NCBI GenBank assembly: GCA_951406725.2
Contig: OX597814.1
Location: forward strand, 146,444,001-146,508,000
Source of the DNA: Octopus vulgaris
Taxonomy: Eukaryota
Reading direction: 5' to 3'
DNA length: 64,000 nucleotides
A program made the position numbers and the translations under genes. Positions 2,641-3,360 of the stretch are shown one piece after another (the stretch's first letter is position 1; every line of letters starts with the position of its first letter). The notes below the pieces were generated by a model. It was given only the letters and a program-made list of their open reading frames with translations. It ran no database searches and was not told the origin of the DNA.

Positions 2641-2993
2641 GTTCTATATTTAAGAGATGAGGAATTACGTACATTATTTTCATAATTTACATTTGATGGG
2701 TTTTGTCCTCATCTTTTCTGTTGTTAACACAACGTTACGGCTGATATACCATCCGGCCTTCATCAGGTGTCTTGGGATGAAATTTCGAACTTTGGTTCTC
2801 ATTCCTAATGTATGTTGTTGTTGTTGTTGTTGTTGTTGTTGTTGTTATTATTATTATTATTATTATTATTATTATTATTATTATTATTATTGTTATTATT
2901 ATTATTATTATTATTATTATTATTATTATTATTATTATTCAGGTCACTGCCAGGAATCGAAATCGGGTCTTGGGGTTAGTAACCACTACGCCC
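2641..2993 (-). mobile_element. tRNA-headed SINE-like element with hammerhead-containing tail (left arm of palindrome)
   Basis: The reverse complement reads ggcgtagtggtt (A box) ... gatttcgattcc (B box) ggcagtgacctg, then (AAT)n(CAA)n, then a tail containing gacacCTGATGAaggccgg..cagccGTAACgttgtgtt. It mirrors 3003-3360. Confidence 0.75.
2726..2771 (-). ncRNA. Minimal type-I hammerhead ribozyme motif, GAAA mutated to GTAA
   Basis: Minus strand: GACAC-CUGAUGA-A-GGCCG gauggtatat CAGCC-GUAAC-GUU-GUGUU. Stem I pairs GACAC/GUGUU; stem II pairs 4 of 5. Confidence 0.6.
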
Positions 2994-3002
2994 ACGAGCA
3001 TA

Positions 3003-3360
3003 CGGTGCAGTGGTTAAAAGCGCGGGCTACTAACACCAAGATTCCGAGTTTGAATCCAGGTAGTGACCCGAATAATAATAATAATAATAATAATAATAAT
3101 AATAATAATAATAATAATAATAATAATAATAATAATAATAATAATAATAATAGTATCAACAACAACAACAACAACATCGAAAAATACCTTAGGGATGAGA
3201 ACCCAGGTTCGAAATTTCCCCAAGACACCTGATGAAGACTGGAGGGTATATCAGCCGAAACGTTGTCTTAGCAGCAAACAAGATGAGGACAAATATCCAT
3301 CGATTGTAAATAATGTAAATTGTAAATTCATATGATTTTGAATAACTCATTCCTTGAAAC
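3003..3360 (+). mobile_element. tRNA-headed SINE-like element with hammerhead-containing tail (right arm of palindrome)
   Basis: ggtgcagtggttaa (A box) ... gagtttgaatcc (B box) at 3004-3057, (AAT)n at 3071-3152, (CAA)n to 3177, then a tail with CTGATGA at 3229-3235 and GAAAC at 3257-3261. Confidence 0.75.
3222..3269 (+). ncRNA. Minimal type-I hammerhead ribozyme motif with intact core
   Basis: aagacac-CTGATGA-A-GACTG gagggtatat CAGCC-GAAAC-GTT-gtctt. The core CUGAUGA/GAAA is intact, stem III is the palindrome AACGUU, and stem II pairs 4 of 5. Confidence 0.7.

Follow-up and report, generated by a model that had tools for sequence, protein, structure and literature searches.

The 64,000-nucleotide stretch of the Octopus vulgaris genome considered here (assembly GCA_951406725.2, contig OX597814.1, positions 146,444,001 to 146,508,000 of the forward strand; referred to below as the window) contains at positions 2633-3363 what is probably a dead, ~25%-diverged, head-to-head copy of a short interspersed element (SINE)-like retroposon dependent on Penelope-like elements (PLEs), its palindromic form being a by-product of integration. 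Each arm of the palindrome carries a tRNA-like head, a microsatellite, and a tail with a minimal hammerhead ribozyme (min-HHR) or its remnant, and homologs of the tail occur behind a different tRNA-like head in contigs of the ENA assembly ERZ21867824. The window copy is an old, inactive relic without evident function; the locus is regarded as a relic because the left arm has lost the hammerhead core, of which the right arm keeps a full version.

A head-to-head inverted pair at a single insertion site

The joined flanks of the palindrome are collinear with a paralogous empty site at 5950-6215 (179/240 identities), and the junction falls exactly at 6066/6067. Because the flanks align in this way, the palindrome entered one site as a whole, and it is one insertion. 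The preliminary description had given its limits as 2641-3360; the palindrome does lie there, but the empty paralogous site sets its ends at 2633 and 3363. Both flanks belong to a host retroposon family whose members close with ...TTCTCTCACTCAA(TAA)n and have (AAT)n as the 3' tail; further copies lie at 5900-6430 and 23830-24147. The parts of the insertion and its flanks are as follows.

2527-2632, plus strand: left flank, host retroposon (2527-2628 is 71% identical to 5960-6061)
2633-3363: whole insertion, a head-to-head inverted pair of 731 bp, delimited by the self reverse-complement match and the empty paralogous site
2633-2812, minus strand: left arm tail, ~1 unit of the ribozyme-bearing repeat
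2813-2939, minus strand: left arm microsatellite, (AAT)n(AAC)n in element sense (Tandem Repeats Finder: TGT at 2813-2846, TTA at 2845-2939)
2941-2996, minus strand: left arm tRNA-like head, with a 12-nt deletion (alignment A1)
2997-3003 (approximate): junction of the two 5' ends, with a spacer of about 7-10 nt
3004-3070, plus strand: right arm tRNA-like head with putative RNA polymerase III (Pol III) A and B boxes
3071-3176, plus strand: right arm internal microsatellite, (AAT)27..(CAA)6 (Tandem Repeats Finder: AAT at 3071-3152)
3177-3363, plus strand: right arm tail, ~1.1 units of the ribozyme-bearing repeat
3364-3486, plus strand: right flank, continuation of the same host retroposon (67% identity to 6067-6209; also matches 23895-23967)

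Positions 2647-3344 are 78.8% identical to their own reverse complement over 725 columns, and the two arms, aligned with the left one reverse-complemented (alignment A1), have a mean column identity of 85% when the microsatellites are counted. For the tails alone, identity is 80% and the Kimura two-parameter (K2P) distance is 0.25 over 178 sites, which corrects the ~85% previously estimated for them, and the heads are more diverged than the tails (K2P of 0.39 over 57 sites). In element sense the order in both arms is the tRNA-like head, (AAT)n(CAA)n, and a tail of ~185 nt. The mirrored arrangement that had been described from the letters of the sequence is borne out by the self-match and the arm alignment; the ~12-nt deletion reported for the left head is present in the latter, and the spacer between the heads, put at ~10 nt, agrees with the length measured. 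The outer ends of the palindrome are both 3' ends of the tail, without a simple repeat, and direct tandem units amount to only about 1.1 per arm.

The pair ATCCCTACAATAC/ATCCTTAAACAC was considered as a weak candidate for a target-site duplication and was rejected, because the host sequence runs on uninterrupted through the empty site. A direct repeat of ~89 bp (86.5% identity), with copies 1190 bp apart at 2332-2420 and 3522-3607, brackets the palindrome together with its host flanks.

A minimal hammerhead in the tail

Metazoan PLEs contain min-HHRs that lack helix III and loop 3 and show palindromic pairing of positions 15.1-16.1 between two copies; these ribozymes combine a long helix II of 6-8 bp with a short helix I of 2-5 bp, leave one nucleotide unpaired between A9 and G10.1, and conserve a G10.1-C11.1 pair (PMC4209133; Cervera and de la Pena 2014). 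They sit in the pseudo-long terminal repeats (pseudo-LTRs) of elements encoding a reverse transcriptase (RT) and a GIY-YIG nuclease, yet most genomic motifs are solitary, and dual min-HHRs on opposite strands, 100-700 bp apart, occur in PLE-rich genomes (PMC4209133). Judged by its primary sequence and predicted pairing, the right arm of the window palindrome matches a helix-III-less PLE-type minimal hammerhead feature by feature. The components of this motif (all on the plus strand) and the corresponding remnant in the left arm are listed here.

3224-3270, plus strand: complete PLE-type minimal hammerhead of the right arm as predicted, with cleavage predicted after U3264 (between ACGUU and G)
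3229-3235, plus strand: core box CUGAUGA
3236, plus strand: unpaired A between A9 and G10.1
3237-3242 and 3251-3256, plus strand: helix II, GACUGG ... UCAGCC, 6 bp
3257-3259, plus strand: core GAA
3260-3263, plus strand: palindromic ACGU
3264, plus strand: H17 (U17), a U
3265, plus strand: position 1.1, a G
2725-2771, minus strand: minimal-hammerhead remnant of the left arm, with a mutated core that fails the strict descriptor

The left-arm remnant consists of CUGAUGA (2766-2760), A, GGCCGG..UCAGCC, GUA, ACGU, and U, with GUAAC in place of GAAAC (A13 to U). The hammerhead core that the preliminary description had assigned to both tails is thus complete, although minimal, in the right arm and mutated in the left. 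The two motifs are spaced 463 bp apart on opposite strands. The palindromic ACGU followed by U is present in both window arms and in the ERZ21867824 consensus, and helix I comprises 5 bp in the left arm (GACAC/GUGUU) and 3 bp in that consensus and is interrupted in the right arm. Among the aligned units of the window and ERZ21867824, 82% of helix II cells are paired, and the G10.1-C11.1 pair is kept in 11 of 13 (columns 34/53). A minimal-hammerhead descriptor found two sites in the 64 kb, at 3229 (plus strand) and 23056 (minus strand), where 0.005 would be expected from first-order Markov shuffles. When the same descriptor was applied to loci L001-L013 (~135 kb), only two units matched, both of them in L009 and both members of the ERZ21867824 tail family.

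No helix III hairpin is present in the motif, in which positions 15.1-16.1 are directly adjacent (ACGU). Cleavage of a monomer is therefore not to be expected (PMC4209133). The window motif falls outside the curated families of canonical hammerheads; its reading as a canonical type I or III motif cleaved at GUC was rejected because helix I or helix III could not be constructed. Alternative structures with a closing stem AAGACA/UGUCUU or a GUUGU...RCARY hairpin after GAAAC reached just -1.2 kcal/mol in RNAalifold and had no covariation.

The other descriptor match in the window is a second, unrelated complete minimal hammerhead at 23012-23064 (minus strand), which reads CUGAAGA-A-GGAAU-GAU-AUUCC-GAA-AUAU-C. 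Homology of the palindrome tail to this locus at ~23050 was not significant. A 31-mer around the 23050 hammerhead is found in three direct copies, at 23050-23080, 23487-23517, and 24178-24208 (family D5). Nearby, at ~23440-23600 on the minus strand, a segment translates as ..GVTVVY*I*CKKCNKFYVGSTTRSL.. and in another frame as ..TRLHQSISEH.., which resembles a decayed GIY-YIG domain of a PLE and would, if real, place PLE remnants in this window; Pfam returned nothing on its stop-free pieces.

Relatives of the tail in ERZ21867824

Related sequences were reached through the open antisense frame of the left tail (window positions 2654-2812, plus strand, 53 amino acids), which was searched against protein representatives. 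The search returned three spurious open reading frames (ORFs) made of ~45-amino-acid tandem units, leading to contigs L009, L010, and L011 of ERZ21867824. By BLASTN and nhmmer these contigs contain 13-14 tail units. The left arm matched the ERZ21867824 loci down to an E value of 4e-16 in BLASTN and the right arm down to 3e-15, and a tail profile (A3), which itself contains both window arms, matched the left tail at 3e-21 and the right tail at 1e-20 in nhmmer, and the ERZ21867824 tails at about 1e-20. Identity to the ERZ21867824 consensus is 69-74% for the window tails and rises to 78-80% in the ribozyme block; for the right tail it is 69% across 85 columns and 78% across the core.

The ERZ21867824 element is ~330 nt long and consists of a tRNA-like head, a body, and a min-HHR unit, as judged from four aligned full or near-full copies. 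Its head has an A box (TAGCGTAACGG) and a B box (GGTTCAATCC) and is followed by a short AAC/AAT-rich stretch, and the family consensus keeps a complete min-HHR core, in agreement with the earlier expectation that a consensus would contain one. The linkage of head and tail expected at other loci is seen in ERZ21867824, where a homologous tail stands behind a tRNA-like head in at least four full or near-full copies, but the head is a different one. Different heads on one tail would conform to the usual modular picture of SINE families.

BLAST with the ERZ21867824 consensus identified seven loci in L009-L011, within 45 kb of contigs that were chosen by match. Partial direct tandems with a period of 126-129 nt and 2-2.8 copies occur at three of the seven loci. 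Head-to-head pairs, with one partner 5' truncated at consensus position 125, 219, or 262, also occur at three of the seven.

L010 pair: minus copy 10043-10400, from consensus position 125; plus copy 10398-10543, from position 1; junction -3 nt
L011 first pair: minus copy 10000-10264, from position 219, tandem; plus copy 10276-10594, positions 1-323; junction 11 nt
L011 second pair: minus copy 18088-18397, positions 1-311; plus copy 18406-18497, positions 262-354; junction 8 nt

Target-site duplications could be checked in the two L011 pairs, the L010 pair being cut by the contig end. The first L011 composite is enclosed by AAGATTAGACGTTA (9986-9999) and AAGATTAGATGTTA (10590-10603), which agree at 13 of 14 bases, and the second by AACTAGTAT at 18073-18081 and 18495-18503 (9/9). 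Because these duplications enclose the whole composite, each of the two L011 pairs was made in one integration event.

The proteins of long interspersed elements (LINEs) in ERZ21867824 are 47-49% identical to those of the window and 56-57% identical to a cuttlefish protein. The contigs also contain a fragment of eukaryotic large-subunit rRNA at L011 6736-7172 (172 bits), located in repeat-rich DNA, and a copy of U6 small nuclear RNA at L010 6238-6344 (90 bits). Two genes called on them, at L010 8154-8576 (plus strand) and L011 3943-4350 (minus strand), contain 3-4 stop codons under translation table 11, so that another genetic code or gene model is possible.

tRNA-like heads and Pol III signals

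The right head of the window palindrome includes CGGTGCAGTGG as a putative A box and AGTTTGAATCC as a putative B box, each agreeing with its motif at 7 of 9 positions; in the left head an A-box-like GGGCGTAGTGG and a B-box-like ATTTCGATTCC were recognized by reading, and agreement over both arms is 7-8 of 9 positions. A possible D stem is formed by GUGC/GCGC. The right head is collinear with the tRNA-like head of a SINE at 6769 (minus strand), with p about 0.002 relative to shuffles. The sense strand of the right arm offers one candidate for termination.

3336-3339, plus strand: first T4 run, a possible Pol III terminator and the only run of four or more T on the sense strand between 2996 and 3363

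This run corresponds to position 341 of the 368 positions of the right arm, 24 nt before its end, and its position is compatible with a Pol III transcript that would span the element.

The SINE used in the comparison of heads occupies 6430-6769 (minus strand), has the head GGCTCAGTGGTTAGAGCG...GAGCTCGAATCCCGG, lies between two (AAT)n-type microsatellites, and adjoins the 5' region of a LINE (~6880-9100, plus strand). A match at 6770-6919 flanked by (GTT)n(ATT)n proved to be a microsatellite and the LINE 5' end.

Integration model and alternative explanations

The hallmarks of PLE insertions are partial tandems, an inverted 5'-truncated copy that abuts the 5' end, and a target-site duplication around the composite (PMC8557442; Craig et al. 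2021). An inverted copy abutting the 5' end is found in the window pair and in the three ERZ21867824 pairs (L010 at ~10400 and L011 at ~10270 and ~18400). Together with the partial tandems and the target-site duplications around composites, these inverted 5' copies strengthen the Penelope connection that the preliminary description had proposed.

In the model that we favor, the tRNA-like head would serve as an internal Pol III promoter, the microsatellite would have expanded from an A-rich linker to (AAT)n(CAA)n, and the tail would provide about one min-HHR repeat unit. Transcription by Pol III would start at the head and read to the T4 run near the 3' end. The RT and GIY-YIG nuclease of a PLE would recognize the 3' unit in trans, and integration would be target primed. 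On extending the cDNA to the RNA 5' end, the enzyme may turn back and copy a second, inverted copy; the product would be two copies joined head to head over a few bases with their 3' ends directed outward, which is the architecture seen here and recurrent in the relatives. According to the literature, a hammerhead without helix III could be cleaved only in dimeric form, as tandem copies would allow, with the palindromic ACGU joining the two motifs. The palindrome is better read as a by-product of Penelope-type integration than as a feature of the element or a functional hairpin. The earlier proposal of a non-autonomous, Pol III-transcribed ribozyme retroelement that could borrow Penelope enzymes is partly supported; Pol III transcription, cleavage, and the PLE partner are inferred.

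A number of results weigh against this reading. The searches recovered no autonomous PLE with this tail, and neither the window copy nor any of the ERZ21867824 copies contains or adjoins an RT or GIY-YIG ORF. No further copy of head or tail is present elsewhere in the 64-kb window, and none was found in the octopod DNA reached through LINE proteins (Argonauta hians L008 and the JGI contigs L007, L014, and L015). No convincing target-site duplication surrounds the window copy. The window head is unrelated to the ERZ21867824 head, although the tails are homologous. The heads had been described as tRNA-like with A and B boxes, of which the box matches stand, but neither ARAGORN, at default and lowered thresholds, nor the Rfam tRNA model recognized a reliable tRNA in the window or ERZ21867824 heads. 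Infernal with the Rfam hammerhead models, suggested earlier as a check on the ribozyme, yielded no match at gathering score in the window and none at an E value of 10 or below in 2400-3600 or 3195-3300, a silence that is attributable to the missing helix III; elsewhere, in searches of the window and three subregions, Rfam gave chance matches only (CRISPR-DR64, CrcZ, a C/D small nucleolar RNA model, and mir-434). The strict descriptor is passed by only 2 of 11 ERZ21867824 units. Covariation scores for helices I and II in 13 closely related units did not exceed those of shuffles, and the one compensatory pair among them (C-G to U-A) can be explained by two CpG transitions; the min-HHR families of PLEs are rich in covariation and compensatory changes (PMC4209133).

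Several of these points would also suit a one-off chimera, in which a mini-SINE or tRNA retro-pseudogene with (AAT)n came to lie upstream of a solitary PLE-type unit and the read-through transcript was retrotransposed once by PLE machinery. We consider this unlikely. The window retroposons at 5900-6430 and 23830-24147 end in (AAT)n, so that a head followed by (AAT)n resembles a complete small retroposon, and both the lack of another copy within 64 kb and the difference between the window and ERZ21867824 heads are in keeping with a single event. The ERZ21867824 family, on the other hand, proves that stable elements with a tRNA-like head and this tail exist, and the AAC/AAT-rich stretch behind its head implies that the window microsatellite may be an expanded linker.

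It is improbable that the palindrome represents an ordinary LINE-dependent tRNA SINE whose tail block is a LINE-derived recognition stem-loop with hammerhead-like boxes of no ribozyme meaning. Neither the outer 3' ends, which lack a terminal microsatellite or poly(A), nor the partial tandems and inverted 5' copies, which are not products of LINE target-primed reverse transcription, agree with such an origin; the tail matches none of the LINEs at hand, and the motif has four PLE-HHR traits that a chance stem-loop would not need. Its appeal lies in the fact that SINE tails are normally LINE derived (PMC4758252), in the abundance of LINEs in the window and in ERZ21867824, and in the behavior of the hammerhead helices, for which covariation is not significant and minimum-free-energy folds favor other hairpins and do not produce the three-way junction.

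Slightly less probable still is a DNA-level inverted duplication of one earlier insertion, whether by template switching during replication or by hairpin repair at a break, unrelated to transposition. Such errors make palindromes of this size, and the arms are similarly diverged; an event of this kind does not account for both outer ends being the element 3' end at one clean empty site or for the recurrence of the architecture at three of seven related loci, with variable truncation of one partner and target-site duplications around the composite. A foldback or miniature inverted-repeat transposable element (MITE)-type DNA transposon with terminal inverted repeats of ~360 bp would explain a near-perfect long inverted repeat that acts as one insertion and is nevertheless very improbable, given that in the relatives one arm is 5' truncated at variable points (125, 219, and 262), that single copies and direct partial tandems also occur, that the target-site duplications differ in length (9 and 14 bp), and that the center is formed by promoter-like heads and no loop. 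The chance landing of two independent family insertions head to head, to which the independent mutations of the arms and the slightly greater divergence of the heads might point, is hardly credible when the 5' ends meet within ~10 nt, the host is continuous over one empty site, no internal target-site duplication is present, and the relatives show recurrent pairs with outer target-site duplications.

Other searches and retroelements of the window

An exact conserved 19-mer searched against metagenome, prokaryote-genome, and viral collections gave only chance matches of 19-26 nt, and a two-frame peptide query returned no candidates from a word-indexed protein collection. The window includes a nearly intact LINE at 43566-46043 (plus strand) with RT and zf-RVT domains and (TATC)n at 46426-46582, which has 68% amino acid identity to Argonauta hians, placing the source of the window among octopods, and 76-77% nucleotide identity to short contigs of JGI metagenomes 3300045642 and 3300037598; from the latter matches it follows that these metagenomes contain octopod DNA. 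A tRNA-derived SINE at 24506-24670 (plus strand), also present at 21736-21809 and 58216-58303, is 78-84% identical to several places in Argonauta hians L008 and represents an octopod-wide family.

Implications and comparison with known systems

SINEs are parasites of LINEs. To our knowledge, a SINE riding on PLEs has been hinted at only for the schistosome element SMalpha and has lately been argued for head-less retrozymes. We propose, tentatively, a class of true SINEs with a PLE rather than a LINE as partner, combining a tRNA-like head with a min-HHR pseudo-LTR unit and present in cephalopods and at least one other animal. If such a class exists, the conservation of the ribozyme block at 78-80%, compared with only ~48% for LINE RTs, would indicate that the ribozyme module is under selection or that the partner has spread horizontally, and a substrate of 330 nt would permit direct tests of PLE trans-mobilization and of the origin of PLE inverted repeats. 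The SINE-PLE partnership would be extended by a cephalopod element with a tRNA-like head, a min-HHR tail, and relatives elsewhere, and such elements would account for part of the minimal hammerheads that occur by the thousands as "orphans" in animal genomes. Their insertions would record poorly understood products of PLE integration, and their short length would make them convenient reporters of PLE retrotransposition. In annotation, repeat pipelines and Rfam-based ribozyme scans collapse or miscall palindromes of this kind. As the preliminary description had supposed, no such element was found described for cephalopods in the open literature.

The element is taken to work in the manner of SMalpha, of retrozymes, and of PLE pseudo-LTR fragments. 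The 5' part of SMalpha is reportedly of Pol III type. SMalpha and Sjalpha of Schistosoma are SINE-like retroposons with a type I hammerhead, known as dispersed copies and as tandem arrays (Ferbeyre et al. 1998; Laha et al. 2000, via PMC8490949). SMalpha resembles the present element in being a non-coding element of ~330 nt with a Pol III-type 5' part and a hammerhead further 3', dispersed and in tandem, whereas its hammerhead is a canonical type I ribozyme with a short helix III, loop contacts, and an Rfam match, and the window element has no helix III and leaves Rfam silent. The host of SMalpha belongs to another phylum, and the window copy has an internal microsatellite and is an inverted pair.

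The animal non-LTR retrozymes are similar in being non-autonomous, ribozyme bearing, and tandem forming, and an origin in PLE pseudo-LTRs and the use of PLE enzymes have been proposed for them (Cervera and de la Pena 2020, via PMC7761336; Li et al. 2026, preprint 10.64898/2026.07.22.740005). Retrozymes are described without a Pol III head, with a classical type I hammerhead that has a (weak) helix III, and as accumulating in the form of circular RNAs. Their tandems have units of 170-400 nt, whereas the ERZ21867824 tandems have a period of 126-129 nt and motifs without helix III, and the window palindrome has one unit per arm.

In motif and insertion, the element is like the min-HHRs of PLE pseudo-LTRs, which correspond to the window motif position by position and also occur as opposite-strand pairs (PMC4209133; Lunse et al. 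2017), with the insertion architecture corresponding as well (PMC8557442). The window unit differs in having no attached RT or GIY-YIG ORF and in standing behind a tRNA-like head, which the literature consulted does not describe for PLE fragments. With tRNA SINEs that have LINE tails, such as the octopus OK, OR1, and OR2 families (Ohshima and Okada 1994) and the mollusc superfamilies (PMC4758252), the element shares a tRNA-like head, a short, non-coding, and modular build, and the combination of one tail with different heads. Those SINEs terminate in a microsatellite or an A-rich tail, and each insertion is one direct copy, whereas the elements described here form inverted pairs or partial tandems and end without a terminal repeat.

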